Below are positions 7,112 through 64,000 of a stretch of 64,000 nucleotides of DNA, piece after piece. Under the pieces are notes generated by a model, which was not told where the DNA came from, ran no database searches, and worked only from the letters and a program-made list of their open reading frames with translations. The stretch lies in contig NC_042998.1 in NCBI RefSeq assembly GCF_006345805.1, positions 155,496,001-155,560,000 on the forward strand, read 5' to 3'. The number at the start of each line of letters is the position of its first letter. The stretch's first letter is position 1. A program made the translations under genes and the position numbers. This DNA is from Octopus sinensis (Eukaryota).

Positions 7112-9592
7112 CATCATCATCATCATCATCATTTAGCGTCCGTTTTCCATGCTAGCATGGGTTGGACGGTTCTACTGGGGTCTGTGAAGCCAGAAGGCTT
7201 CATCAGGCCCAGTCAAATCTGGCAGTGTTTCTACGGCTGGATGCCCTTCCTAACGCCAACCACTCCGTGAGTGTAGTGGGTGCTTTTTACGTGCCACCCG
7301 CACTGGTGCCAGACAGAGCTGGCAAACGGCCACGAACGGATGGTGCTTTTTATGTGCCACCGGCACGAGGGCCAGGCGAGGCTGGCAACGGACACGAAAC
7401 GGGGCGGTGCTGGCAACGGTCGCGAAACGGAAAGTTCTCTTACATGCCACCGGCACTGGTAACACATCTGCAATTTCCATTGATCGATTTCCATTGATCG
7501 ATTTCGATTCTGATCCTCACTTGCCTCAATGGGTCTTCACAAGCAGAGTTTTGACATGCCACCGGCACTGGTAGCACATCCGCAATTTCCATTGATCGAT
7601 TTCGATTCTGATCCTCACTTGCCTCAACACGTCTTCACAAGTAGAGTTTTTGTGTCCCAGAAGGGAAGGTATGCATACGTAGGCTGGCTCCATCCCATGT
7701 AGAAGGCCACGGGTTGTGGACTCACTTGTCCTGCCGGGTCTTCTCGCGCACAGCACACTTCCAGAGGTCTCGGTCTCTAGTCATTTCCTCAGTGAGACCT
7801 AAAGTTCAAAGGTCGTGCTTCACCACCTCGTCCCAGGTTTTCCTGGGTCTGCCTCTTCCACAGGTTCCCTCAACCGCTAGGGTGTGGCACTTTTTCACAC
7901 AACTATCTTCATCCATTCTCGCCACATGACCATACCAGCGCAAACGTCTCTCTTGCACACCACAACTGATGCTTCTTAGGTCCAGCTTTTCTCTCAAGGT
8001 ACTTACACTCTGCCGAGTGTGAGTACCGGCATTACACATCCATCGGAGCATACTGGCTTCATTTCTAGCGAGCTTACGCATATCCTCAGCAGTCACGGCC
8101 CATGTTTCACTGCCATGTAGCATGGCTGTTCGTACACACGCATCATACAGTCTGCCTTTCACTCTGTGCGAGAGGCCTTTTGTCACCAGCAGAGGTAAGA
8201 GCTCTCTGAACTTTGCCCAAGCTATTCTTACTCTAGCAGTTACACTTTCAGCACACCCGCCCCCGCTGCTGACTTGGTCACCTAGGTAACGGAAACTATC
8301 AACTATTTCTAGTTTTTCTCCCTGGAAAGTGACGGAAGTTGGTCTCAGAGCATTTTCAGTGTTTATTGTTCCTGAGCATCTGCCACATACAAAAACCATC
8401 TTCCTAGTTAGCCTTCCTTTGACATTGCTGCATCTCTTATGTGTCCATAGCTTACACTTGGTGCATCTTATAGAGTTTCTACCTACACCTTTTCTACAGA
8501 TCGAGCAGGCCATCTACCTGAAGGTGTTTGTGATTTGTCTACCTTCCTACTGATTACGACTTTGGTTTTAGCTAGATTGACTCTGAGGCCCTTGATTCTA
8601 ATCCTTGTTTCCACACCTGAAACTTCTCCTCCAGTTCTGATAGCGACTCAGCAATTAGAGCAAGGTCATCAGCATAGAGGAGCTCCCAAGGGCATCCTGT
8701 CTTGAATTCCTCCGTTATTGCCTGGAGGACTAAGATAAATAGGAGGGGGCTGAGTACTGAGCCTTGGTGGACCCCTACCTCTACCCGGAATTCTTCACTG
8801 TACTCATTTCCAACCCTCACCCTACTAGCGGCGTCCCTATACATGGCCCGCACAGCTCTCACTAACCATTCATCTATCCCTAGTTTTCTCATTGCCCACC
8901 AGATAAGGGATCGGGGGACCCTGTCGAAGGCTTTCTCCATGTCAACAAAAGCCAGGTACAGGGACTTATCTTTGGCTAGGTATTTCTCCTGCAGCTACCT
9001 TACCAGGAATATAGCATCAGTAGTACTTTTCCCTGGCACAAACCCAAACTGCATCTCATCTAAACTAACTCTCTCTCTAATTAGTTGGGCTATGACCCTC
9101 TCCGTAACCTTCATCACCTGGTCCAACAGCTTGATACCTCTGTAGTTATTTGTATCTAGGGCATCACCTTTACCTTTGTAGCAGTTGACTATTATACTGC
9201 TACACCAGTCATTGGGTATGACCCCTTTGTGTATCACCTGATTAACTATATGGGTGACTAGGCTATAGCCGACACTACCAGACATTTTGAGCATCTCTGC
9301 AGTGATTCCTGATGGGCCTGGGGCTTTCCCTGTCTTCATGCTTCTAATTGCCTTAGCTACCACAGAACTATCAACTCGGATAGCTGGTCCCTCTGTTGGG
9401 TCAACATTCGGCAGACTCTCTTTATCCCATTCATTTTCTTCATTCAGCAACCTTTCATAGTGGCATCTCCAGACCTCTCTCTTTGCATCCTCATTTAGCG
9501 CAAGTGAACCATCTTCCATGCGAACACACTTCTCTCCTACCACATCACGATTCTCTCTCACACACTGTCTTGCAACACGAAACACCTCCACT
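7112..9592 (-). mobile_element. 5'-truncated RTE LINE, family B: RT, PHD-like finger, C-terminal region and long 3' UTR
   Basis: NYRGIKLL, QFGFVPGKSTTDAIF, FVDMEKAFDRV, GVHQGSVLSPLLF, LLYADDL, MLHGSETW; one nonsense (8995-8997) and two apparent 1-bp deletions near 8595 and 8510; (ATG)n tail. Confidence 0.95.
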
Positions 9593-9879
9593 TTATTATA
9601 ATACATATGTGACTAATTCAGAGAAACATTACTTTCATTATTAACACATTGTCACTCTCGTAATGCAACACTTTGTAATTTTGATTCATACTGAAAGTGT
9701 GAAACTATTTTCATTTTGTAATGAAACCTGGTCATAGTAAAGAAGGGTATTTGAAATAACTACAGCTGGTTATTGAGATAACGTAGAAAATATATAAATG
9801 AAAATACGGCTTATTTGATATGTGTAATTGATTTGATTGTTCTGGAAGGCGGCAAGCTGGCAGAATCGTTAGAAATAAA

Positions 9880-12562: not shown

Positions 12563-15500
12563 ATTTTTTCTTTAGTTTCAGCTCTTAGCTGCGGCCATGC
12601 TGATGCACCGCCGTTTTGTGCTACACTGTTATTACGAAGAACCTCCTGTAATATGTGGCACTTGGTGAAGAATGCAGTTTGATATAGCTACCCTAATTTG
12701 CACCTCTTGCCGTGAGGTAGGTTCATCTGGGACTTTCGACAGGAAGAGGTCCAGTTTTGTTTTAAAAACCGCTACATCTACTTTGTGCAAGTTCCTCAGA
12801 CTCTTTGGGAGAATATTAAAAAGCTGTGGGCCCTTGAAACCCAGACTGTTGCAGTAGCTAGTCCTGAAGCGTGATGGCATTGCTGGGATCTTTGGCACTA
12901 TGCAGTGTCGTCCGTTTCTGGCATTGGTGTAGCTTTCAATGCCAAAATTTGGCACAATTCCTTCGAGGATCTTCCAGATATATATTACTGCATACGTCTC
13001 CTGTCTTCTCTCCAGGGAGTAGAGTCTTAGCTGTTTCAACCTTTCCCAGTAGCTGAGCTGTTGCAAAGAGACGATCTTCTTTGTGAATCATCTCTGGATT
13101 GCTTCAAGGTCCGCTGTTAATTTCACACTGGTGGGTAACCATAGCTGTGAGCAGTAATCCAGGCACCTGAGAATGAATGTCCGCCAGAGGACCAGCATGG
13201 TTTCCTTATCTCTGGTTCTGAATGTTCTTTGGATCCATCCAGCCAGTCATCTGCACTTTGTCACCATCCTGGTAATGTGCACTTGGAAAGAGGTATCATC
13301 ACTTATGTCGATACCCAGGTCTCTCACTGACTTAGGCTCTGGGATTGAAATTCACTGTGGACTGGTGTACCCTGTAAGTTTAATATTCAGTTTTGGATGC
13401 TGGTAGCACAGGGCCTGGAATTTTTCAGCATTAAGCTGCATATTATTATCCTCAGCCCATCTGTTAATTGAGTCCAACTCCTACTGCAGGTGTGCAACAT
13501 TGCTGGGGTTCTGTATTTTCTGTGAGACTTTCGTATCATCGGCATAGCTTGCCAGAGTGGCTATCTGGGCATTTGAGGGCATATCTGAGAGGGCCACTAT
13601 AAAAAGCAGTGGTCCCAAGACTGCGCCCTGTGGAACACTGCTCACTATTTGTATGTTCATAGAGGTGGCTCCATTAGCCACTACTGCCTGACTCCTAACT
13701 TTCAGGAAGTCATGTAACCACTCTCCAAGTTTTCCAGCTATGCCAAGGTCACGCAGTTTGTGGCATATCATACCATGATCCACCTTGTCAAAAGCTTTTG
13801 CAAAATCAAGGTATATTACATCCACATTTTATTTGTTGAGTAACTGCCTCAACACCCAGTCATAATGTTATAAGAGCTCGGTCAGGCAGCTCCTACCTGG
13901 TCGAAAAACATGCTGTGTATCACTCAGCAAGTTATTTTCTTCAAGGAATGCAATTAGTTTCCCTCTGACTATCCGTTCCATGACTTTGCTGATGTGTGAA
14001 GTCAGAGAGATAGGCCTATAGTTTTTGGCATCTGCTCTACTTGATGTATTGGGCATATTATTCCCTCCTTCAGCTTGCTTGGCAGTTTGCCGTTTGTAAG
14101 AAAGCTCTAGAAGAGAATCTTGAGGGGTTTTGCCAGAGCATGCTTACACGCTTTGAGGAGGATTGCTGGGAAGCCATCAGGACCAGTAGTTGAGTTTTTG
14201 TCCACTTCATCTATGGCTAGTAGGATATCTTTTTCACTAATGTCAATACAGTCTATTGTAACCGCCTCGCTGGTTATAGGTGAGGCGGCAAAGAAGCCCA
14301 CTGGTTCGTTTACTTGTCTGTGTTCTAACAGGGTGGTAAAGACACTTTTGAACTGGCCATTCAGCATCTCACTGATCATAGTTGGACTGTCTGTGAGGGA
14401 GCCATCCTTTTGGAGGAGGGGTCCTATCTTGTAGTGCACTGAGACTGTTTCTTTCGCGTAATGAAAGAAGGCCTTTGGGTTTGATTTAATGTTTTTTATA
14501 ACCCAGGCTTTCTCCTTCACATAGAATTATTGCAGCCTTTTTCCATTCTCCATCAGTGTTTTTTTCAGTCGGGATGTTTCGCTACATTTGGGATGTTGGT
14601 TGAGTCTATTTGCAGCCTTCGTCTGTCGTCTCATGAGGATCTTCCTCTCTCTTGGAATCTTGCTCCTATTTGTTTTGGCCTTGTACTCTGGAACATATTT
14701 CTGGCATATGGCTTGCACAGAAGACATGAAACATTCTAGATTCATGTCAATGTCAGGTGTGGAAAGACATTTCGGCCAGTCCTCTCTGAGGATCTCTTTC
14801 TGGATCAATTTCCAATCTGCTTTGTGGCAGTTCAGATTGGAGAGTTTTCAGGTGCTTCCTTTAGGCGGTATGTCTCTGGTTACTTTCGACCCAAACATAG
14901 ACACCTCTATTACGTTGTGATCCGAGACTAATGTCGGTGTCACTTTCACATCATGAATGATGTCCATATTGTTTGTGAAGCAGAGATCCAGAATGTTATT
15001 CGCCCTAGTTGGTTTGAGTACAGCTTCCTCCATGAATAGGGCATTGGTGAGGTTGAGCAGGGACTCCACCTGTGCTTGCTTGCAATGAGTCACTCCTGAA
15101 AGTATGAGACCTTCGGGCCATTTGACGTTGGGGAAGTTGAAATCACCCATAAGAAATATGGTCATGTGGTGTTTCAGATTCATGAGGATTTCTTTCATTC
15201 TTGTGAGGCAATCTTCACACTTGCCTATGTGGTTTGGGGCATATGGTGGGCAATATGTATTGCATATGACTATATTATGTTGTCTTATGTATACAATTAG
15301 AGTGTCACATACAGAGTTTGAGTATGCCAGTAAGACCTGGGGTGTGAGGTCATCACGGATGTATACAGCAACTCCACCACGGCTCCTTTCCCTTCTGTCT
15401 GTTCGCACACCTCATATGTGCATAGTTTGATACGTGTACTTCTGCGTCCTCTATATCAGAGCTGAGGTGAGTTTCCATGAGTGCTATGCATAGGGCTTGA

Positions 15501-15690
15501 TTGCATGCAGTAAGATCTCTCAGGAAAGAAATTTGTTTCTATTTTGATGCAACAGGCCCCCAATATTTAGTAAAAGTATTGGGGTGACGACTGTGCAGGC
15601 ATTAGAGGAGGCCATCCTGTGTCTGTTGACTATGGTGGTCTTGCATAGTGGTGGGCAAGGTTCCTGCTTTGTGCCTGGAGTTTTATCATG
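12563..15690 (-). mobile_element. CR1-like LINE, decayed ORF2 (APE and RT) plus the end of ORF1; same family as 57890-61719
   Basis: RGGVAVYIRDD, MGDFNFP, NYRPISLTS, YLDFAKAFDKV, YADDTK, SYWERLKQLRLYSLERR; 3' tail at 12563-12612. Confidence 0.92.
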
Positions 15691-15774: not shown

Positions 15775-16186
15775 CTCTCTTTTACTCTTTTACTTGTTTC
15801 AGTCATTTGACTGCGGCCATGCTGAAGCACCGCCTTTAGTCGATCAAATTGACCCCGGAACTTATTCTTTGTAAGCCCAGTACTTATTCTATCGGTCTCT
15901 TTTGCCGAACCGCTAAGTGGCGGGGACGTAAACACACCAGCATCGGTTGTCAAGCAATGCTAGGGGGACAAACACAGACACACAAACACACACACACATA
16001 TATATATATATATACATATATACGACAGGCCTCTTTCAGTTTTCGTCTACCAAATCCACTCACAAGGCATTGGTCGGCCCGGGGCTATAGCAGAAGACAC
16101 TTGCCCAAGATGCTACGCAGTGGGACTGAACCCGCAACCATGTGGTTGGTTAGCAAGCTACTTACCACACAGCCACTCCTGCGCCT
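15772..16186 (-). mobile_element. Full-length tRNA-derived SINE with CORE-like block, inserted in (TA)n
   Basis: head AGGCGCAGGAGTGGCTGTGTGG, B-box-like GGTTCAGTCCC, CTTGGGCAAGTGTCTTC block, (GTAAAAGA)n tail. Confidence 0.9.
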
Positions 16187-19224: not shown

Positions 19225-20514
19225 TCAGGTCATCCCGTAAGTTCTGTCCAATTTCACCTTTTTTAAATTTGAATGAAATTTAATAGTATTTTAGAATGTC
19301 TAATGGAATTAAAAATTATTTTTATGCATTTGTGTACATTTAAACTAATTAAATATTATTTTACAGAATAATAAAATTAAAATTTCTTTGATTAAAACCC
19401 TTTCTAACATGGAAGTATCCAAAGAGCATTTCAGGCACATAATACTTAATGAGTACAAAAAAGAAAACTCTGCAGCCGAAGTGACTCAAAACATATATTC
19501 AGTTTATGGGAAAGAAATGCTTGAATGAAAGAACTTGCAGAAAATGGTTTGCAAAATTCAGAAATGGAGATTTCAGCCTTGAAGATGAAGATCAAACAGG
19601 ACATCCAGTTGAGTTTGATGATAAGCTCCTTGAGGCGTTACTTGAAGAAAATCCTGCATTATCAGTTGAAGAATTGGTAATAAAGTTTAGTTCAAACCAC
19701 ACAACTGTTCATCGTCATCTTTAACAACTTGGAAAGGTTCCAAAACTTGGAAAATGGGCGCCTCATGAATTGTCCGAAAGCAACTGCAAATTCCGAGTTG
19801 ACATCTGCTCTTCTCTCCATTCTCGTGAACTCATTTTACCCTTTTTGGATAGACTTGTGACTGGTGATGAAAAATGGATCTTCTATGGAATGGTTAAACG
19901 TCATAAACAGTGGCTTGGTAAAAGGGAAAAAGCTCAACCACAACCGAGAAGGGAGCTTCGTGGGAAAAAGGTTTTTCTCTTTATCTGGTGGGATTACAAA
20001 GGAGTAATTCACTTTGAATTGTTACCACCTAATGCAGCAATCAATGCTCAAGTCTACTGTCAGCAATTAGTGTCTGAACCAGGCTTTGAAGAAAAAAAGA
20101 CCTGCTTTAGTGAAACAAAAAGGAGTGATGTTTCATCAGGACAATGCGCGACCCCACGCTGCAAAAATCACATCACAGAAGATCAAAGAGCTTGGTTGGG
20201 AAAAAATTCCTCATCCATCTTATTTTCCCGACCTTGCTTCTTCAGACTACCATTTGTTTTGTAGTTTACAGAATCATTTGGGGGACATAACTTTTGCAAG
20301 CCAGGAGGAGGAGGTCGAAACTGACATTTCAGAGTCCTTCGCTTTGAAACCAAAAGAGTTTTACGTTGATGGGATTAAAAAGCTTGTAAATAGATGGAAG
20401 GAAGTCATAGATAATCAGGGAGAGTACACTGATGATTAAATTTCAATTAAATATAACATTTGATCACTTGTTTTCTTTATTCAAAATTCAGACAGAACTT
20501 ATGGGATGACCTGA
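19225..20514 (+). mobile_element. Full-length mariner (DD34D) with disabled transposase at 19409-20439
   Basis: TA TSD; 24-bp TIR TCAGGTCATCCC(G/A)TAAGTTCTGTC; WAPHEL, VTGDEKW, HQDNARPH, PDLASSD; two frameshifts and one stop. Confidence 0.95.
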
Positions 20515-27285: not shown

Positions 27286-27652
27286 AAGGTGGCTGCATGG
27301 TAAGAAGCATGCTGCCCAACCACAAGGTTCCAGATTCAGTTTCACTGCGTGGCATCTTGGGCACTACAGTCTACTTTAGTCTCAGGCCGAACAAAGCCTT
27401 GTAAGTGGATTTGGTTGACGGAAACTCAAGGAAGCCTGTCGTATATATGCGTGTGTGTCCCCCCCACCATCGCTTGACAACTGATGTTGATGTGCTTACA
27501 TCCCTGTAACTTAGCAGTTCAGCAAAAGGGACCAATAGAATAAGTACTAGGCTTACAAAGAGTAAGTCCTGGGATCAATTTGTACAACTAAAGGCGGTGC
27601 TCCAGCATGGCCACAGTCAAATGACTGAAACAAGTAAAAGAATAAAAGAATA
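27286..27652 (+). mobile_element. tRNA-derived SINE
   Basis: colinear with 33187-33570; tail GGCGGTGCTCCAGCATGGCC...GTAAAAGAATAAAAGA. Confidence 0.85.
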
Positions 27653-33189: not shown

Positions 33190-33570
33190 CGCAGGAGTGG
33201 CTGTGTGGTAAGTAGCTTGTTTACCAACCATATGGTTCCGGGTTCAGTCCCACTGTGTGGCACCTTGGGCAAGTGTCTTCTACTATAGCCTCGGGCTGAC
33301 CAAAGCCTTGTGAGTGGATTTGGTAGACGGAAACTGAAAGAAGCCCGTCGTATATATGTATATATATATGCATGTGTGTGTTTGTGTGTCTGTGTTTGTC
33401 CCCCTAGCATTGCTTGACAACCGATGCTAGTGTGTTTATGTCCCCGTTACTTAGAGGTTCGGCAAAAAGAGACCGATAGAATAAGTACTGGGCTTACAAA
33501 AGCTTGATTAAAGGCGGTGCTCCAGCATGGCCGCAGTCAAATGACTGAAACAAGTAAAAGAGTAAAAATA
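33187..33570 (+). mobile_element. Full-length tRNA-derived SINE in (TA)n
   Basis: A-box-like TGGCTGTGTGG, B-box-like GGTTCAGTCCC, CCTTGGGCAAGTG core, tail shared with the CR1-like LINE. Confidence 0.9.
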
Positions 33571-40018: not shown

Positions 40019-42631
40019 CCCTTTAGTGTTCAGATTAACTTGTCAAATGTAATGCTTATCTGTTCAGATTAATTTGGATTTATTCAGGTTCAAGTGGGGT
40101 GTCCACAATATTTACTTGTAACTTTGTTAATTTTCTACATACAGATTTGAAACTTTGTAAATGGGTGCTTAAATGCCAGTGGTTTATAATTACGTAATTT
40201 TAGCTGATCTTTCTCACTACATTTGACTTTTATGGGCAGGTAAATTTAATTAACAGGTGTAAAAACAATAACATTATGAATAAACACTAAAATTCATATT
40301 CTTAATACATCTTACCTGTTTGATTTGCTGCTAAAATTATCCCAGATGTCAACGGCCAACAATTTTACATTTTTCAAGATGAGGTACATTAATTTGAATG
40401 AATTAAAATACAGGTGTAATCAGTACAAGATTTTACTCTTTTTCTATATTTCATTCAAACGTCATCATTGAAAAGAAAGTACAAAAACTCTTTTACTAGT
40501 CAATATACCATTGGCTATGCACTCATATACAATTTAATGAATTCATTCACGTAACAGAATGCATCTAATAAAAAAATCTCATTAACAGGTGAGACAAAGG
40601 TGAATACAGGTGTGTAACATACTGAAAATTAATATGTAGTTCTCACTTTCACATATTATATTATAAAATTAAAAGGAATATGTAAAATTATACATTTATG
40701 GCATATTTCTGTCATGAAACTGTCCAAAGCACCCTTTACACAAGGGCACTTGGCAAAACGAACACATGTAGGATGTTTCGATCTGGTACCCTTTCGCAGT
40801 TTTTCTTTTTTGTTGCGAACACAGTCTGCACACTTTTTTTCTTCCATCTATTTTTTCCATTTGATGGAAGTCAACATTTTCTCTGTTGACATCCACCTCA
40901 GTTAATTTTGCTTTTCTCCCAGCTCTGTGCTTTCTAGAAGAAAAGCCCTCACGTAACTGAGATGCAATGTCAACCCGAAATTTCAAGTGGTCGTAGTCTT
41001 TCGGTGGCGGAGGTACTTTGTGGCTTTTTACGTAAACAATGTGGGCATTTACTATAGTTAAATTAACTAAAAACCACAAAATGTACCTCCACCATTTCTT
41101 CCCAGGTCGACCAACTGGGTAATATGCCCGATATTGGTCGGATTTGTCTACGCCACCATATATTTGTTGTAGCAAATATTCACGAGGGGTTTCCCCTCAG
41201 CCCCAACACCAGTTTGTTCATTAGAAGACAGAAATAAAATCTGCCTTTTGTCTTTAAATGCAGTAACTAACAAATTTTGTTTTTGCATTTGCAAAATGTC
41301 CCCTCTTTTTTTTAATTTTGCTTTTATTTCATGGGGTAAACCTTTACGATTTCCCATAACAGTGCTGCACATGTAAGTGCTTACACGTGCAAGATTTTCT
41401 GCCAAAGCCACTGAAGAAAAAAAACGATCGAAATAGAGGTGTCGGTGCTGATGGTGAAAAGGTTGTGTAAGAGACCATACAACATCATGTCCCAATCCAT
41501 GTGGTCTTTTCGCATTATATTTCTTACCTGTGTAAACATCGAAGTTTACACAGTATCCTGTCTCCGATTCACAAACTTCCCATACCTTGATCCCCCATTT
41601 AGTAGGTTTGGCAGGCATGTACTGCCGAAAATGTACTCTGCCCTTAAATCCTATCATCGCTTCATCTACACTGAGATTTTTTCCAGGTAAATAAATAGTT
41701 TTATAATTATGTACGAGTAAATCGATTACCGGACGTACTTTGTACAGGGGATCGTAGTTTGGGTCGTTTTTGTTGGGAGCATTGGAAGAATCAGTCAAAT
41801 GCAAATACTGAGATATTTTCGAATACCTCATCTTCGACATGATGCTTGAAATATATGGATCGCCATACCTTACATCGGGACTCCAATAGTTCCACAGTCG
41901 AGGAAGCTGTCTGACTCCAAACATAATGTTGATCGTAAAAAATGCTCTTATTTCCGCAGTATTTGTTGGCAGCCATAGCGGATCGCTCCTTCCACGAACA
42001 GAAATTAAATGTTGGGCATATTTGTTCGTTTGCTCCGCAACATTTTCAAAAAAACTTTGAGGCAAAAATAAAAATAGATAATCCAGTGGTTGAGCATCAG
42101 GAGGTAAATCATGTTGTGGACCAGTGTTTTCTGTAAAATCAGAAATTGTTACTGGTGTCGTAATTTTCGACCATGTTGCCTTGTTTACACTATCGTTTTC
42201 ATCACTTTCATTTTCTTCACTTTCGTCATCGAAATTTTCTTCGTCCGACGAATAATCGCTGATATCAATATCAGACTCATTCCAAGTCAAAAGACTTTTG
42301 TTTTCGTTGATATCTTCAACATCATCAATGGTAAAGCCTTCAAAATCGGAATCGCTACTTGCTGACGCCATTTTTTTCACAACAAACGTATAGTTCTCTT
42401 CACACGTGGAAATAACCATGTGGTCGAAACAATTTCACAGTATTTATACTTGAATAAAGGCGGGAAAGGCTTCATCTCGCATTATCTCAAAGCTACGAGA
42501 ATTTAATAACGTGATTTGTTTATTTTTTTAGCGATTTCGTAGAGTGGTCATTTACGGCCGGATTTGGCCGGTTTGAACAAATAAAGGGGAATTAATTCTG
42601 GCCGGATATGGCCGGTTTGAACACTAAAGGG
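40019..42631 (-). mobile_element. Full-length piggyBac, 2613 bp
   Basis: TTAA TSDs at 40015-40018 and 42632-42635; perfect 14-bp TIR CCCTTTAGTGTTCA. Confidence 0.97.
40696..42371 (-). pseudogene. piggyBac transposase (PGBD4-like), 558 aa if one G is restored near 41156
   Basis: SVDEAM, YFDRFF, GGVDKSDQ catalytic motifs; C-terminal CxxC..CxxC..C..C..H domain; one frameshift only. Confidence 0.93.
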
Positions 42632-54676: not shown

Positions 54677-57197
54677 CAATGATCCCTCGCTACTTCGCAG
54701 TTCAACTGTCGCATATTCACGACTTCACAGATTTTAAAAATATATATACATGAACACCTAAATTTTTCATTAAATCCATTAAAATATTAAAAATAGATAT
54801 TATTTCCTTATAGATTAGGAACAACAAGACAAGCATAAAATAGCAAAAAGGCATATACAAGGGTATTTGAACTTAAGACAGGCTTTGATTGGTGCAATGG
54901 AGAGGGACGCTGAATCACAGCTTTCTATTTTGTAATCTGGCCTTTTGACCAATGCTCAGATCCGCAGCATCTTCTTGTCTCTCTCTCTCTCTCGCAGCCA
55001 TTTTACTTCAAGCTTTCTCGCCGAGTGATTTACTGTACTACTTTACACTGTTCTGTGTGTGATTTTTTTTTGTGTTTCTTTGCGTTTTCATCCCCTGCAA
55101 TGGCTCCCAAAACGTTCTGCTTCTTCCAAGGCTGGTACTGAGCCTAAACGCAAACGAAGAATGATGACGAATGCTGAGAAGGTGAAATTTCTGGATATGT
55201 TGAAGGAAGGAAGAACTTTTGCTGCCATAGCCCACCATTTTAGCGTGAGTGAATCCACCATTCGCTACATCAAGAAGGACGAGACTAACATTAGGACTTG
55301 GCTGCCATCACCTTTAATAAGTTGGTGAAGAGAGTGGTTACGGCTCGTAATAAAACTATCATCTGTATGGAAGCTGCTTTGGCCGTATGGATAGCCGACT
55401 GCCAAAAGAACATAGCCTTGGATACGAACATCATCCAAACAAAGGCTAGGAGCCTGTACAAGACTTTTGCCGTTAAGGAACCTGAGGACAACAGTGGCAA
55501 CCATGAAGAAGAGGATGAAGACGATGTAGAAGATCTGCAACCAGGGACGTTCAGTGATTCACAACCTAAAAAAACGTCCTTTTTCTGCGAGCAAAGGGTG
55601 GTTTGTTAAGTTCCAGAAACGCTTCAGCCTAAAAAGCGTTTCCCTGCATGACGAGGCTGCTTCTACTGACATGAGCACTGTTGAAACATATGTGAATGAA
55701 ACTTTCAAGAAGATTATCTGCGAAAGTGGATATAAGCCCGAACAAGTTCTTAATATGGACGAGATGGGCTTGTTTTGGAAAAGAATACCATTGCAAACTT
55801 TTCTGTTCAAAGAGGAAGCAAAAACCTCTGGCTTTAAAGTGTACAAGGATTGTGTGACCCTCGTGATGTGTGGCAAAACTGCGGGATTTTTGTTAAAGCC
55901 AGGACTTATTTACAAGTCTAAAAACCCAAGGACCTTAAAAAACAAAAACAAGAATCTGCTACCCGTACATTGGATGCATAATCCAAACACATGGATAACG
56001 AAGATGCTGACCTTCGACTGGTTCCACTAGTGTTTTGTCCCGCAAGTCAAGGTGTATTAGAGAAGTGCTTACCATTCGAAATTCTTCGCCTTATGGATAA
56101 TGCTGGTGGCCATGCTACTGATCTGTTGCATGAGGGCATTCAGATTGAGTTCCTGCCACCCAACACTACGTCACTTATTCAACCATTGGATCAGGAGGTT
56201 ATCAAGGCATTCAAGGCCCTATACATGAGGAATGTCCTGGTGAACCTGGTTGCTTCTGTGGATGCCACCCAAGAAGATGAAGACGAAAATTTTAACTTGA
56301 AAGCATACTGGCAGCAGTACACAATTGCTACGTGCCTCCAAAATATCCAGAAATGAAACCTGTCACCATTAACATGAGCTGGAAAAATGTGTGGCCCGAG
56401 GTTATTTACGACGACAAGGGATTTACACCTACCGAAATCCAGCACTCCACAGTACAGAAAGCTTTGCAGTTGGCTGCATTCATTGGAGGTGATGGCTTTG
56501 CAGACATGAACACGGGAGACATCGACGCAGACCTTGAAGACTTGATGAAGTCGACCAGAGAAGGAGGAGAAACGGAAGAAGTTGTCGACTAAACTAGCTT
56601 GACTTTGGAACGGCTGGCCAAGCTCTGCAACTTGGCTAAAGAGTTGAAAGAGGGGTCACAGGAATGGGACGACGATATGGTTCGTTCTGTGCAATTTTGC
56701 AACAAGGTTGACGAAGTCATGAATCCCTACAAGATGCTCCTTGAACAGAAAAAGAAGCAGCGGCAGCAACTTCCTATCACAATGTTTTTGCAGCCTCACA
56801 AAAAAGAGCCAGTTCCTGCTGCTACTACTATGGTTGCACCTTCGGAAGGAGTGGAAGAAGTGTCCCAGGAAAGGGTACCGCCATCAACTTCATCATCATC
56901 ACTTCTACTGCGCAGCAAATTCATCACCATCATCATTCAAATTTTACTTCAACTTCTTTCATGTTGAGTACAGTAACAATCTTTATTTTTTTTTAATCTA
57001 AGGTGTTATTGCTTAACAGTTGTCCTTGTTATTAATAGACTACTGCAATGGATGTGTTGTTAACAGCACAGGGAAGGTTTTAAAAGTCCAAATACATGTT
57101 AAATAAATACTGTAAATATGGTGTCCCTACTTCACAGAAATTCAGTTATCACGGCCAGTCTCAGAACCAATTTACCACGATAAACGAGGGATCACTG
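54677..57197 (+). mobile_element. Full-length Tigger/pogo-type element with frameshifted CENP-B-HTH/DDE transposase starting at 55100
   Basis: TA TSD; TIR CA(A/G)TGATCCCTCG; KRKRRMMT..EKVKFLDML, ASKGWFVKF, NMDEMGLFWK, MDNAGGH, IQPLDQEVI. Confidence 0.92.
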
Positions 57198-57789: not shown

Positions 57790-57889
57790 NNNNNNNNNNN
57801 NNNNNNNNNNNNNNNNNNNNNNNNNNNNNNNNNNNNNNNNNNNNNNNNNNNNNNNNNNNNNNNNNNNNNNNNNNNNNNNNNNNNNNNNN
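57790..57889. other. Assembly gap, 100 N
   Basis: run of N; hides the 3' end of the adjacent LINE. Confidence 1.
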
Positions 57890-57898
57890 GGTTTCACT

Positions 57899-60862
57899 TC
57901 ACGAAGGCTTTCTAGCAACTGCCATTTGGTGCATGAGAGAGTTCGATGCAGCTGCCCTCATCTGCCCCTCCTGCCGTGAAGTTGGTTCATCTGGGACACC
58001 TGACAGGAAGAGATCCAGCTCCATTTTAAAGACATCTGCATCCACCCCATGCAGGTCTCTCAGGTTCTTCGGGAGGATATTGAAGAGCTGTGGGCCTCGG
58101 AAGCCCAGGCTATCACAGAATCTTGTCCTACATCTTGATGGCAACTTTGGAGTCCTAGGCACCACGCAGTGGTGCCCAGTTCTGGCATTTGCGTAGCTCT
58201 CGATGCCAAAGTTCAGGACACGTCCCTCCAGGATCTTCCAGATGTATATTATGGCATATCTTTCTCGCCTACGCTTTAAGGAATAGAGTTTTAATCTCTT
58301 GAGTCTTTCCCAGTAGCTTATATTCTGCATAGAGGCTATCTTCTTTGTGTAGCTACGTTGGATCGCGTGTAGCTACGTTGGATGGTGACCATAGCTGAGA
58401 GCAGTAGTCAAAGTGGCTTAGGACAAGTGTCCTCCAGAGGACCATCATGGTTTCTTGTTCTCTTGTTCTAAAGGTTCTGAGGATCCATCCGGCCAGTCGT
58501 CTACATTTCATTGCCAATTTAGCAACATGTACACGAAAGGTCGCGTCATCACTCATGTAAATACCTAGGTCACGCACTGATTGTGCCTCTGGATTGCTAT
58601 TCCTCGGGTCCAGTGTATTCATGGGTATTGCATTAGTTTTGCATGCTGATAGTATAGAGCTTGAAACTTTTCAGCATTGAACTGCATGCTATTCTTTTCG
58701 GCCCACTTGTATATTTTGTCCACCTCACATTGCAGGTGTTTAGTGTCCTCAGGGTTCTGTATTGCCTGTGAAACTTTTGTATCATCTGCATAACTTGTGA
58801 TCGTAGCTCTCTGCGTGGCTGAGGGCATGTCTGAGAGGGCCATTATGAACAGTAGTGGTCCCAGAACAGTGCCCTGCGGAACACCGCTCACTATTTGCGT
58901 GTTAATGGAAGTGGCCCCATTGGCTACTACCACCTGACTTCTATCTTTCAGAAAGTCATGAAGCCATTCTCCCAGTTTTCCAACTATGTTGAGATCACGC
59001 AGTTTGTGGACATATCATTCCATGATCGACTTATCAAAGGCCTTTGCAAAGTCAAGATATATCACTTCCACATTTGAGTGGTTGAGCAGCCGTTTCAGCA
59101 CCCAGTCATAGTGTTGTAGGAGCTGAGTTAAACAGCTTCTCCCTGGTCGGAAACCATGTTGGGTGTCGGGCAGCAAGTCATTCTCTTCAAGGAAGGTGAT
59201 CAGCTTCCTTCTGACTATTCGTTCCATGACCTTGCTGATGTGTGAGGTCAGAGAGATAGGTCTATAGTTCTTGGCTTCCGCTCTGCTACCTCCTTTATGA
59301 ACGGGGCATATTTTACCTTCCTTCAGTTTTCCTGGAAGTTTGCCAGCTGCAAGGAAGCTCTGAAAGAGGAACTGCAGTGGTCTTGCTAGGACTCTCTTAC
59401 ATGCTTTTAGGAGGATTGCCGGGAATCCATCGGGGCCAGTAGCTGAGTCTGTTTTCATTTCATCTATAGCCTTGATTACATCGTCTTCCTTTATATCGAT
59501 GTAATCTATCGTCGCCGCCTCTGATTTTATATCTGCAGTGGTAAAAAAGTTGGACTGGTGATTTGGAGATGCCCAAGGGGTGGAGTGAAATCACTCTTGA
59601 ATTGCTCATTCAGTATTTCACTTACCCTCATTGGTTTTTCTGTAAGTGTGCCATCCTTTTCGAGGAGTGGCCCTAATCTACAGTGCACCGTAGCTGTTTC
59701 TTTGGCATACTTGTAGAAAGCTCTGGGGTTAGATTTTATGTTGTCTATAGCCCAGGCTTCTTTGTCTGCTCTTTCTCTTTCATGGGAGAGTTGCAGACAT
59801 TTTTCGATTTCCAACAGTTTTATTTTTAGGCGGGACTTTTCACTGCTTTCAATCTGTTTGTTTAGGCGATTTGAAAATTTTGTACGCCGTCTCATTAAAA
59901 TTTTCCTCTCTCTGGGGATTTTGTTCTTGTGTACAGTGGCCTTTCTCTCTGGGACACATTTGTAGCATATGGCTTGCATTACAGACATGAATTGTTGAAG
60001 TTTCACGTCGATGTCTGGCGAGGAGAGACATTTAGGCCAGTTTTGTTTGAGGATCTCTTTCTCAATTTGTTTCCAGTTTGCCTTATGGTAGTTCAAGCTG
60101 GAAAGATTCTGAGGGTTTCTTGTAGGCTGCATGTCCGTGCTCGTACATGGTCAGCTCTATCATGTTGTGATCCGAGAGTAGTGTCGGTGTCACTTTCACA
60201 TTATGGATTAGATCCATGTCATTTGTGAAGCAGAGATCCAGTGTGTTACCTGCCCTGGTTGGTTGGAGTATTACCTGCTCCAAGTATAGGGTGTTGATGA
60301 GGTTCAGGAGGGACCTCGCCTGTCCTCGTTCACATCTTGTCATTCCTGGGAGAGAAAGGCCTTCGGGCCATCTGACATTGGGCAGATTGAAGTCTCCCAT
60401 AAGAAGTACACTTATGCGTTGTTCTAATGTGGTTAGAACTTCTTCTATTTTTATAAGGCAGTCTTCAAACTTGCCCACATGGCTTGGGGCATCTGGAGGG
60501 CGATATGTAGCACACACAACTACATCAAGTTGCCTAATATGTACAATTAGTGTGTCACACACCGAGTTTGAGTATGACAAGAGGACCTGGGGTGTGAGGT
60601 CCTCACGGATGTACATAGCAATACCTCCATGACTCCTTTCTTTTCTGTCGGTCCGTAGTACAGCATACTGTAGTATGTGTAACTCCGCATCTGCTATGTC
60701 CGGTTTCAGGTGCGTTTCCGTAAGTGCTATGCATAAGGCTTGATTGCATGCAACAAAGTCTCTCAGGAACGGGATTTTTGTCCTGTTACTGAGTGTTTGC
60801 AGTCCTCTGATGTTCAGTAGGAGCATCGAGGTGAGGTGTACGTTGTTGCCGGCAGTGTCCAT
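57899..60862 (-). pseudogene. ORF2 (APE endonuclease and RT) of a CR1-like LINE, about five frameshifts
   Basis: LLLNIRGL, ALTETHL, MGDFNLP, TLDLCFT, SDHNMI, NYRPISLTS, QHGFRPGRSC, VPQGTVLGPLLF, YADDTK, SYWERLKRLKLYSL. Confidence 0.93.
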
Positions 60863-61719
60863 CCTGTGTCTGTTTGCTGTGGTGGTCTGGTATATAGTGG
60901 GTAGTCCCACCTGTGGGCTTGGGTTTGATGAAGCCAGGTCAGCTGCTGTACAATCTTTTGTGCCATGCACAAAAAAGATTGTTGCTCAACAGCTGCCCTT
61001 TCGACAACATCATGTTGGCGGTTTGTGGCACGCACAACATCTGCGTACCTCCGCTTTGGGGCAAGTGGTGCGTGGTCCATCCCTTTTCCTTGTGTTGATG
61101 GTTTGTCCATCTGTCTCGTGTCTCTGTGGCAGGGTCCCCGATGTGCAAAGCGGCAGCCTGCACCTTCCTTTCCATGCCAGCAGGAACCTCTCAGGTAGAA
61201 CCTACACACCCGTGTGCACTGTTTGTTTCCATCTTTTGCGGTTCCACTTCTATTCCTGGTTTTTTCACCCTTTGGTCCTGCTTGAGCTTTTCCTTTAGCT
61301 CTTCCAGTCCTTCTTTTAGTTCTTCCTCCTCCCTCTACCTCTTCACCGGGTTCTCCGTCTCCATGGCCCTTGCTGCCGGTTGGAGAACTTGCACCTGGGT
61401 TCACTTCCCGGGCAGGTTTCTCATTCAAAACCTCCTCCCGGGCGTCCACCAGATGGGGGTGACTTCTTTCATCGTCTCCATTCTTGCCATCTTTGCCCCG
61501 CTCGTTCTCAAAGATGGCATCAAGTGCGCCAATGTGTGACCGTACAAGCGCATTTGAGCGCACGAATTCCCGTCTCTTTCGCTCCATCTGAGCCGCTGTC
61601 CTCTTGTAGCCGTTGTTCTTCAGCGCAGCCGCAATCACCTCGCTAGGGCTATCTCCGTCGGCGCACTTCCAGGCTCGTACAAATAAATCTAGTTTGTCAG
61701 GTCTCCAGGCTCTGGACAT
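60814..61719 (-). CDS. LINE ORF1, 301 aa, open: Myb/SANT(trihelix)-like N-terminus and CCCH zinc finger
   Basis: IAAALKNNGYKRTAAQMERK; CRFYLRGSCWHGKEGAGCRFAH (C-x7-C-x8-C-x3-H); lies directly upstream of ORF2. Confidence 0.85.
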   Translation of the reverse strand: MSRAWRPDKLDLFVRAWKCADGDSPSEVIAAALKNNGYKRTAAQMERKRREFVRSNALVRSHIGALDAIFENERGKDGKNGDDERSHPHLVDAREEVLNEKPAREVNPGASSPTGSKGHGDGEPGEEVEGGGRTKRRTGRAKGKAQAGPKGEKTRNRSGTAKDGNKQCTRVCRFYLRGSCWHGKEGAGCRFAHRGPCHRDTRQMDKPSTQGKGMDHAPLAPKRRYADVVRATNRQHDVVERAAVEQQSFLCMAQKIVQQLTWLHQTQAHRWDYPLYTRPPQQTDTGWTLPATTYTSPRCSY

Positions 61720-61779
61720 GCTGGATAATCTGTCTATTTGTTTATCTATCTAACTATGTTCGAGAGAAGACTAGAAGAT

Positions 61780-62200
61780 ATTAAGGCTAATTAGAAGATA
61801 GAGTATTTGAAAAAGATATTAACAATATTAAAGTTTGTGGGTAAAAACGTTATTTAATCTTAAGGCTAATTAGAAGATAGAGTATTCAAAAATATATTAA
61901 AGTGTGGGTAAAAATGTTAAAGTGTGGGTAAAAACGTTATTTAATCTTAAGGCTTATTAGAGGATAGAGTATCTGAAAATATATTAACAAATATTAAAAT
62001 GTGGGTAAAAAGACTAATTAGAAGATATTAAAGTGTGGGTAAAAAATTAGAAGATATTAAAGTGTGGGTAAAAACGTTGTTTATTCTTAAGGCTAATTAG
62101 AAGATAGAGTATCTGAAAAATTATTAACAATGTTAAACAAAATTAAACAATATTAAACGTTATTTAATCTTAAGGCTAATTAGAAGATAGAGTATCTGAA
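61780..62200 (-). repeat. Irregular tandem array in the presumed 5' UTR of the minus-strand LINE
   Basis: five copies of TTAAGGCT(A/T)ATTAGA(A/G)GATAGAGTAT interleaved with GTGGGTAAAAA units. Confidence 0.85.
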
Positions 62201-62939
62201 AGAGGAGAGATGAGAGGGTAAGAAAGAGAGGAAAGATTATTTATCTATCTAAAGTTCGTGAAAGTTCACGTCCATGCATATATACGCATACATATATACA
62301 TACACGCACACATATATACATACACGTACACACACACACACACATATACACAGACGGGGAGAGAAGGAAGGTGGAAGAAAAAGAAAATGAGTGAAAATAT
62401 ATTAAAATATATATATTAAAGTGTGAAGAAAGGGTTATTTAATTCTGAAGCCAATTTCTGCCTTCGAGAACAGATATTGAGATGTAAACAAAACAAAAAT
62501 GGCGATCGTAACTTTAACCGAGATGTGGGCTTAAGTTAAGGGGGATAAAATAGGATAATAAACAAAATATGAAATAGAAGATGAAAGTGATACTTAATCC
62601 AACGATGTGGTCTGGATTTTTTGTGGTTTACGGGATTGTTTTCCAGGAGAGATGCTTCTTTTTCCTTCTTGCAGGAGATAACTTGATTCAGTGAGTTTTT
62701 CCACCATGTGCGTTTTCGGCGAAAATGAAAATTACTGTATATATGTATATATATATATATATATTTTTTATATTTTTAACCAAAGTGTTGTAATGATCTC
62801 TATGACTTAGAGTTTTACGTTTTGCTACTTCAGTAGGTTATTTCGCCGATCTATGCAAACTTTTTCACAGAGCAAAGGCAATCACGTCTCTCTCTGCTGA
62901 AAACGGAACCGGATATATTTATTTTTTACTTTATTTATA

Positions 62940-63830
62940 TATATATATTTACTTATTTGTTACTTTATTTATATATTGTACTATCCAAGTAGAATCTTTT
63001 GCATAACTTCTCTTTCATTACTTTCTCTTTCTCTGTCTCTTCACCTTCACCCACTTCAATTTCTCACTATATCCAAGTAGAATCTTTTGCATAACTTCAT
63101 CTCTTTAATTACTTTCTCTCTGTTTCTTCACCTTCGCCCACTTCGCTTTTATCAATTTCTCACTATATCCAAGTAGAATCTTTTGCATAACTTCTTCTCT
63201 TTCATTACTTTCTTTCTCTCTGTCTCTTCGCCTCTCCCTGTCACACCATCTTTCTCCTCTCAGCCTCTCACTCTTCCTAAATATATAGACGCGAACATTA
63301 GAAATATAGTCGTAATTAGTTTAGAAGAAAACTTTCGTAGTTACAGACATATATATTTATAATTAGTTTAGAAGAGAACTTTCATAGTTGCAGATAAATA
63401 TATATTTATTTGTTACTTTATTTATATATTCTACTATCCAAGTAGAATCTTTTTTGCATAACTTCATCTCTTTCTTTTCTTTCTCTCTCTCTTCACTTCT
63501 CTCTATTACACCATCTTTCTTCTCTCAGCCTCTCAATCTTCCTAAATATATAGACATGAACATTCTCCTCTCACTCTCTCTCATTTTCATCTTATCTTCT
63601 CTCAGCCGCTCAATCTTTTGCATAACTTCCTCTCTTTCACTCTCTCTCTCTTCACTTCTCTCCATCACGCCTCTTTCTCTGTCACACCATCTTTCCTCTC
63701 TCAGCCTCTCAATTTTCCTAAATATATAGACACGAACATTCTCCTCTCACTCTCTCTTACTCTCTTCTTATCTTCTCTCAGCTGCTCAATCTCTCTAAAT
63801 ACATAGACACTTTCTTTCTCTATTTCTTCT
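62940..63830 (+). repeat. CT-rich tandem array in the presumed 5' UTR of the plus-strand LINE
   Basis: four copies of TATCCAAGTAGAATCTTTTGCATAACTTC (near-identical) and four of CTCAGC..CTAAATA(T/C)ATAGAC. Confidence 0.8.
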
Positions 63831-63899
63831 TTACCCTCTATTACACTGTTGAATTTTAAATATAATTAGATAGATAAATAAAAAAAATATACAAAAAAA

Positions 63900-64000
63900 A
63901 TGTCCAGAACCTGGAGGAGCATGGAATTGGCCTTGTTTTTGAGAGCCCGGTACTGTGCTGATGGAAATAACCCAGACAACATAATTACAGCTGCGCTGAA
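63900..64000 (+). CDS. Start of a paralogous LINE ORF1, truncated by the window edge: MSRTWRSMELALFLRARYCADGNNPDNIITAAL
   Basis: aligns without gaps to ORF1 at 61719 (MSRAWRPDKLDLFVRAWKCADGDSPSEVIAAAL); shared TTAGATAGATAAA just upstream of both ATGs. Confidence 0.85.
   Translation, partial: MSRTWRSMELALFLRARYCADGNNPDNIITAAL

Follow-up and report, generated by a model that had tools for sequence, protein, structure and literature searches.

The locus described here raises the question of what kind of protein precedes the apurinic/apyrimidinic endonuclease (APE) and reverse transcriptase (RT) of a long interspersed nuclear element (LINE) in octopus, and whether that protein carries a Myb/SANT-like domain. 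The stretch analysed, hereafter the window, comprises 64,000 nucleotides of Octopus sinensis (contig NC_042998.1, positions 155,496,001 to 155,560,000) with a G+C content of ~37%, a value that, together with the load of other transposons in the window, fits octopus genomes. An open reading frame (ORF) on the minus strand of the window (60814..61719) runs from ATG to stop and encodes 301 amino acids plus the stop codon. The initial annotation, in which the strand had gone unstated, correctly described an open 301-residue ORF1 upstream of APE-RT, and proposed a Myb/SANT-like module at its N-terminus and a CCCH finger further on. The ORF is read here as ORF1 of a CR1/L2-like LINE whose product has three modules kept by selection, the N-terminal one being most probably a divergent Myb/SANT-like domain of the trihelix type. 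The probability of this reading as a whole is put at roughly 70%.

ORF1 and its LINE family

Downstream of ORF1 and on the same strand lies a decayed ORF2 (57902..60862, minus) of ~987 codons spread across three frames, comprising APE (Pfam Exo_endo_phos_2, 5e-13), pieces of RT (RVT_1, 1e-10 and 8e-12) and a C-terminal region. At least four frameshifts and one in-frame stop interrupt it. An exhaustive phmmer search of 1.8 billion representative proteins with the ORF1 product returned 30 homologues, the best at 1.4e-31 and some of them full-length (289-371 amino acids). A word-indexed protein search gave no match with the single ORF1 protein as query, and only two or three matches with alignments as queries. 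Named relatives occur in Octopus vulgaris and O. sinensis, where they are unannotated and carry the label 'hypothetical', and the others derive from ENA and Logan assemblies.

The order of ORF1 followed by APE is kept at six further loci (L001, L003, L004, L005, L006 and L007). At L001 and L003 the APE shows 60-68% amino acid identity to ORF2 of the window. L004, from O. vulgaris, contains a related element with 68% nucleotide identity and also a 96% identical copy that belongs to the same family as the window element and lacks its 5' part. L005, from the same species, holds an intact ORF1 of 318 amino acids (P0031) followed by an ORF2 region. The two remaining loci are from O. sinensis: L006 is a decayed copy, and L007 (VCDQ01000708.1) shows 81% nucleotide identity across ORF1, which carries two frameshifts. 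Frameshifted copies in L004, L006 and L007 are those of a multi-copy family that has diverged into subfamilies. Within the same pairs of elements ORF1 evolves faster than ORF2 (37-38% versus ~60-76% amino acid identity). The LINE family to which the ORF of the window belongs, as its ORF1, has diversified and is present in both O. vulgaris and O. sinensis.

The 3' ends of two O. vulgaris copies show a conserved hairpin-like motif, GGCGGTGCCCCAGCATGGCC...GCTGAAAC, and behind it short repeats of the AATC type without poly(A), which is the style of 3' end found in CR1 and L2. In the window the first bases of the 3' untranslated region (UTR) are present (57890-57901, minus) and the remainder lies behind an assembly gap of 100 N (57790-57889). 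Because the gap falls exactly at the 3' UTR, it hides the hairpin and microsatellite tail of this LINE and leaves its target junction unreadable. A gap also occurs at the equivalent place in the related element of L004.

The ORF2 frame is open for ~57 codons ahead of the ORF1 stop (60817-60985, minus). The sole ATG of that stretch, at 60862, is replaced by Val in L007, and no Met is found in L001. Since this ATG is not conserved in relatives, translation of ORF2 probably depends on reinitiation or frameshifting and not on a start codon of its own.

Conserved modules and the N-terminal domain

The ORF1 product begins with MSRAWRPDKLDLFVRAWKCADGDSPSEVIAAALKNNGYKRTAAQMERKRREF and carries near its N-terminus the motif W5-x4-L10-x-L12-F13, followed by IAAALKNNGYKRTAAQMERK. 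In alignments of the 25 relatives (A1) and of the C-terminal part (A3), three conserved blocks are parted by charged sequence that cannot be aligned. The first block (residues 1-75; 61495..61719, minus) has the pattern W..EL..L..AW..PN.I..ALK.NGF.RT.AQIERKK.EF.RSY.LIRPH..LD. It is followed by a variable linker rich in Gly, Glu, Lys and Arg (residues 76-165; 61225..61494, minus) that is predicted to be disordered. The second block (residues 172-193; 61141..61206, minus), C[KR]F....G.CWHG..G..CRFAH(P), corresponds in the window to a single CCCH finger, C172-x7-C180-x8-C189-x3-H193, within CRFYLRGSCWHGKEGAGCRFAH. The four zinc ligands are kept in all intact homologues in A1. The third block (residues ~220-301) reads YADVV...A.EQ.SFL.MAQRIV.QLTWLH and then RPPQ.TD.GWPP. 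It comprises a conserved amphipathic C-terminal helix (residues 220-271; 60907..61062, minus), YADVV...EQ.SFL.MAQKIVQQLTWLH, and a tail rich in Pro and Gln (residues 272-301; 60817..60906, minus), RPPQ.TD.GW.P, that overlaps the open ORF2 frame. The patterns W-x4-L-x-L-F and C-x7-C-x8-C-x3-H given in the initial annotation are present as it described them.

Structure prediction by AlphaFold2 with an alignment yields three helices in the N-terminal domain (residues 7-19, 25-35 and 42-74) with a confidence score (pLDDT) of 80-93. The finger region scores ~75, and the C-terminal module is modelled as one long helix (residues 225-271, pLDDT 72-88), where the initial annotation had expected a short one. 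The linker, already suspected of being basic and disordered, scores ~45-55, mostly below 55, and is hardly alignable among homologues. No beta-rich domain appears in this model. A single-sequence AlphaFold prediction (pLDDT 46) is uninformative.

The predicted CCCH finger is real at the level of the family, where the consensus exceeds the zf-CCCH cut-off of 20.5 bits with a score of 27.7 bits. The window protein alone reaches 14.8 bits with zf-CCCH and 20.2 bits with Torus, and shows a weak match to the fingers of MBNL1 (E ~0.07). The middle spacer of eight residues is atypical. Neither RRM, CCHC, PHD, esterase nor Transposase_22 is found among the Pfam matches of the window protein, of the consensus or of the top families of the 25 relatives (E<=1 to 10). 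Comparison of the whole protein with PDB sequences returns MBNL1 and vimentin at E ~0.07 or worse, and no usable relative. The C-terminal helix matches no Pfam family, and its profile retrieves from the PDB sequences the helices of stathmin, only through repeated weak matches that are not regarded as meaningful. Hydrophobic residues in this helix are spaced i, i+3/4 and i+7, which would fit self-association or the binding of a partner.

Selection on these modules is indicated by comparisons of synonymous and nonsynonymous substitution rates (dS and dN). Between subfamilies, synonymous sites of the N-terminal domain are saturated (proportion of synonymous differences, pS, 0.7-0.9), with dN between 0.33 and 0.70. 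Between the window and L007, dN/dS is 0.275 for the whole of ORF1 (dS 0.74), 0.13 for the N-terminal domain (dS 1.46), 0.30 for the linker (dS 1.06) and 0.20 for the C-terminal module (dS 0.40). A second, paralogous ORF1 begins at 63900 on the plus strand, and its 33 visible codons give a dN/dS of ~0.24 against the window ORF1, in line with the selection that the initial annotation had suspected there. These values indicate that the modules have been kept by selection in active lineages. The uneven dS suggests either a mosaic history, through recombination between subfamilies, or constraint at the nucleotide level. A mosaic history would fit the 'reticulate' evolution of ORF1 described for the superfamily (PMC4120745).

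The copy in the window is itself a dead insertion. Its ORF2 is broken, and its ORF1, although open, has Asn at position 56 where the family has a near-invariant Tyr, which L007 retains. It is also probably 5'-truncated just upstream of the ATG. That ORF1 is intact beside a frameshifted ORF2, a point made in the initial annotation, is correct as a fact. It is weak as evidence, since at the indel rate of ORF2 a stretch of 0.9 kb would not be unlikely to stay free of indels (by our own estimate roughly 1 in 4-5).

The case for a Myb/SANT-like N-terminal domain comes from profile, alignment and structure comparisons. When the consensus of the domain was scanned against 24,736 Pfam families, it matched Myb_DNA-bind_4 (PF13837) at 24.1 bits (E=4.7e-5; cut-off 27 bits) over profile positions 2-68 of 89. 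The sole other match was Myb_DNA-binding (E=0.1). Control consensuses, one reversed and nine shuffled, gave no Myb match and nothing better than E=0.07, and adding more sequences to the domain profile left the consensus essentially unchanged. Six of the 25 relatives match PF13837 individually, the best at 0.0017 (19.2 bits). Alignment by hhalign with the trihelix domain of Arabidopsis GT-1, the sequence of which was confirmed against PDB 2JMW, gives a score of 19.4 (P=0.0043) that was reached by one of 300 shuffles. In this register the first Trp, the G-F-x-R turn and the hydrophobic core positions are aligned. The third helix is rich in Lys and Arg. Among the Foldseek matches, those of lowest rmsd (root-mean-square deviation) at near-full coverage of the target are Myb/GARP DNA-binding domains (6j5b_C, 8xas_C and 7d3t_A), with 6j5b_C at a TM score of 0.65, an rmsd of 3.2, a probability of 0.72 and E=1.3.

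The same LINE ORF1 could instead carry at its N-terminus a lineage-specific three-helix bundle unrelated to Myb/SANT, which would serve RNA binding, oligomerisation or contact with ORF2p or host factors. In that case a generic helix-loop-helix pattern that includes a G[FY].R turn would explain the weak Myb matches. Small bundles of three helices arise easily, and a number of results weigh against the reading preferred here. All Myb scores fall under curated thresholds, including that of the consensus and that of the window protein, which covers nearly the whole of Myb_DNA-bind_4 at 12.7 bits (E=0.17). The hhalign probability with GT-1 is 7.9%, and two of the three signature tryptophans are missing, the second falling in a deletion and the third being replaced by Lys. 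Foldseek searches of the PDB and BFVD gave no significant match and none at E<0.35, with calmodulin-like helices on top. The domain profile found in the PDB sequences ribosomal protein S8 only (E ~0.07), taken as chance. Elsewhere in the protein, the CCCH block shows a dN/dS of 0.68 between the window and L007 (dS 0.14), a value that derives from ~10 changes only. The assignment of the element as CR1/L2-like, within the Jockey superfamily, is based on an ORF2 with APE and RT whose size is close to the ~1,000 amino acids typical of the group and on the style of the 3' end, and every binding activity proposed below for the ORF1 protein (ORF1p) is inferred from sequence.

What speaks against an unrelated bundle is that the only two matches of the consensus across Pfam are both Myb families while shuffled versions find none. 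The match also runs in register over the domain and agrees with the alignment to a solved trihelix structure, and the lowest-rmsd structural matches with near-full coverage are DNA-binding domains of the Myb/GARP type. Homology of the N-terminal domain to the Myb/SANT-like fold is accordingly considered probable, and a lineage-specific bundle unlikely though still a serious alternative. The domain is not classed as a member of PF13837. What stands of the module first proposed for this locus is the set of three helices, the near-threshold consensus and the register with GT-1; a score above the cut-off and a significant Foldseek match are the parts that did not follow. Other explanations concern the ORF as a whole. 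A host or domesticated gene for a Myb/SANT and CCCH factor that merely adjoins the LINE, or an ORF1 co-opted by the host, would account for an ORF1 that is open while ORF2 is broken, and several O. vulgaris gene models do consist of ORF1. These models, however, carry 'hypothetical' labels only. ORF1 and ORF2 are linked in six loci across several diverged subfamilies, many copies are frameshifted or truncated, and the ORF1 stop overlaps the ORF2 frame in the window and likewise in relatives. The copy in the window has moreover lost the near-invariant Tyr56. A host gene is thus very improbable. Even less credible is an ORF that arose by chance, motifs included, within decayed repeat DNA; the AT-rich, repeat-rich setting is all that speaks for it. 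This reading is refuted by the thirty homologues with their best value of 1.4e-31, the conserved blocks and a dN/dS well below 1.

Comparison with known ORF1 proteins and a possible role

Like the ORF1s of the Jockey superfamily (CR1, L2 and Jockey), the octopus ORF1 is the first ORF and lies immediately 5' of an ORF2 with APE and RT. The product is also modular in the same manner, with a zinc module for nucleic acid, a helical segment and a fast-evolving linker. The difference lies in the modules, which are a Myb/SANT-like domain and a CCCH finger in place of the RRM, CCHC, PHD, esterase or Transposase_22 domains, none of which was detected. A catalogue of 448 ORF1s of this superfamily lists RRM, CCHC, coiled coil, C-terminal domain (CTD), PHD, esterase and zinc-finger/leucine-zipper modules (Metcalfe and Casane 2014, PMC4120745). 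It makes no mention of Myb, SANT or CCCH, in agreement with the usual modules named in the initial annotation. The types I-V of Khazina and Weichenrieder 2009, surveyed in the same catalogue, are RRM with CCHC (I), coiled coil with RRM and CTD (II), PHD (III), esterase (IV) and 'unclassified' (V). The octopus ORF1 would belong in the last of these.

The three-module layout was not found in a 2026 survey of vertebrate CR1-group elements, in a survey of mollusc transposable elements or in a paper on octopus LINEs, which covers RTE and Dong elements. More generally, an ORF1 with Myb, SANT or CCCH was not found in the full-text literature that was searched, Repbase and Dfam being outside the scope of the search. 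Since these two databases were not covered, consensi that include the ORF1 of this octopus family may already exist without annotated domains. A layout that combines a probable Myb/SANT-like domain with a CCCH finger and a C-terminal helix is new relative to the literature searched. The domain capture proposed as its origin in the initial annotation is unsupported for want of a donor, and the DNA binding proposed there is speculative.

The N-terminal domain resembles trihelix domains (PF13837; GT-1, 2JMW) in its three helices with a long and basic third helix, in the first Trp, in the G[FY].R turn before helix 3 and in the hydrophobic core positions. It differs from GT-1 in its shorter loops, in the replacement of the second and third Trp and in its place at the N-terminus of a LINE ORF1. 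Trihelix domains of the Myb/SANT-like kind also occur in accessory proteins of PIF/Harbinger elements. Among non-LTR (long terminal repeat) retrotransposons, R2 has an N-terminal zinc finger and Myb domain that position the protein on its target DNA, and TRAS has a Myb-like region in ORF2. In LINEs, Myb modules are found in the RT-bearing proteins of such site-specific elements and are not known to occur in ORF1. The octopus element thus shares with R2 and TRAS a Myb-type module in a non-LTR retrotransposon. In R2 and TRAS the module is on the RT-bearing protein of a site-specific element, whereas here it is on ORF1 of an APE-type and apparently dispersed one.

The CCCH finger resembles the RNA-binding fingers of PF00642 (MBNL1 and the PARP12/ZAP type) in having its C..C..C...H ligands amid aromatic and basic residues (CRF, CWHG, CRFAH). 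It differs in being single rather than tandem and in its middle spacer, which is 5 in the C-x8-C-x5-C-x3-H type of PF00642 and 8 in the octopus ORF1. Where the literature searched mentions CCCH fingers and LINEs together, it does so only in connection with host restriction factors, of which ZAP is an example.

These comparisons suggest a possible role for the protein. ORF1p may coat the RNA of its own element to form a retrotransposition particle. The CCCH finger and the basic linker would bind single-stranded RNA, as RRM and CCHC modules do in other LINEs, and the C-terminal helix could let ORF1p molecules associate with one another, as the L1 ORF1p coiled coil does, or contact ORF2p. The Myb/SANT-like domain might then provide a second contact with nucleic acid or chromatin, either at the target, with double-stranded DNA, or with a structured region of the RNA. 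That this domain is a genuine Myb/SANT-like DNA binder able to read sequence, placed on ORF1p and not on the RT protein, is doubtful. If it were, the RNA-packaging protein of an APE-type LINE would have gained a tether to double-stranded DNA. Such a tether could, for example, direct the particle towards chromatin or repeats that it favours, or feed back on a tandem-repeat 5' UTR of the element itself, and a sequence-reading N-terminal domain combined with a CCCH finger would define a sixth type of ORF1.

Of the parts of LINEs, ORF1 proteins are understood least, and the sets of domains they carry are known to be shuffled among lineages. The layout described here would show that LINE RNA can be packaged without RRM or CCHC modules, and it would raise the idea that contact with DNA or chromatin is made by ORF1p and not by ORF2p alone. 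Octopus genomes contain the family in abundance, and the expansion and expression of retrotransposons in them are of current interest (PMC9115989). Copies of it have already been mis-annotated as host proteins or exons. A gene model for lipin in O. sinensis (P0011, with a Lipin_N domain; L007 45720-46605) ends in residues from a decayed ORF1 linker, more likely an annotation chimera than an exonisation.

Upstream region and other elements in the window

The leader of ORF1 (61720..61760, minus) extends ~41 nt upstream of the ATG and contains TTAGATAGATAAA, which is found upstream of the paralog too. Homology with L007 ends at its boundary, at window position 61760. The paralogous ORF1 start (63900..64000, plus) is arranged head-to-head with the first and runs off the window after 33 visible codons. 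It is 58% identical to the window ORF1 over 33 amino acids and matches the family profile at E=7e-9. A search of the 64-kb window with the same profile found no third ORF1. The paralog is preceded by a CT-rich 5' UTR (63633..63899, plus) that is part of a tandem-repeat region (62941-63809). The 5' UTR of L007 matches this CT-rich region (68% over 326 nt, E=3e-24), and the upstream flanks in L001, L004 and L006 are also CT-rich. Because of this match and these flanks, the usual 5' UTR of the family is probably a CT-rich monomer array. In that case the main element of the window would be either 5'-truncated just before the ATG or provided with a different leader that is not shared.

The element is adjoined by AT-rich tandem repeats (61778..62204) with units of 87, 29 and 20 bp. 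Within them GTGGGTAAAAA occurs six times (61837-62074) and nowhere else in the window, where 0.04 occurrences are expected; the six copies reflect tandem duplication. These repeats have no counterpart upstream of the related ORF1s in L004-L007, and they are probably not part of the element; neither a role as its 5' UTR nor one as an array bound by ORF1p is supported. The initial annotation had suggested autoregulation through the repeats at 61780-62200, a proposal that finds no support in a sequence that is not conserved in the family, L007 sharing only the ~41 nt of the leader. The GGTAAA core of GTGGGTAAAAA resembles the plant GT-1 site, which we take to be a curiosity rather than evidence.

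The 3' tail motif of the LINE (GGCGGTGCnCCAGCATGGCCrCAG...CTGAAAC) occurs at four further sites in the window: 15815-15831 (minus), 27596-27612 (plus), 33516-33532 (plus) and 12593-12609 (minus). At one of the four a third related LINE copy (~12590-15630, minus) has its 3' end; this copy has an APE ORF (14848-15408; Exo_endo_phos_2, 3e-12) and is truncated near the end of ORF1. The other three lie in short units with a common upstream sequence, CAAAGAATAAGT..GGG..CAATTTG..ACTAAAGG, and look like a short interspersed nuclear element (SINE) that borrows the tail of the LINE. Microsatellites of the (TA)n type lie directly at several 3' junctions of the LINE family and of the SINE-like units, both in other loci (L004 ~14940 and ~3100; L005 ~10000; L006 ~10920) and in the window (~15720 and ~33600). 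This could reflect a target preference or the plain commonness of (TA)n in the genome.

The window also contains a LINE fragment (7806-9606, minus) whose last ORF carries a PHD finger, and several DNA transposons. These are a mariner (19770-20264, plus) with Transposase_1, a piggyBac-type transposase (40696-42419, minus; DDE_Tnp_1_7, 3e-72) split by a frameshift, and a decayed pogo/Tigger element (55059-56967, plus) with CENP-B_N and DDE_1.

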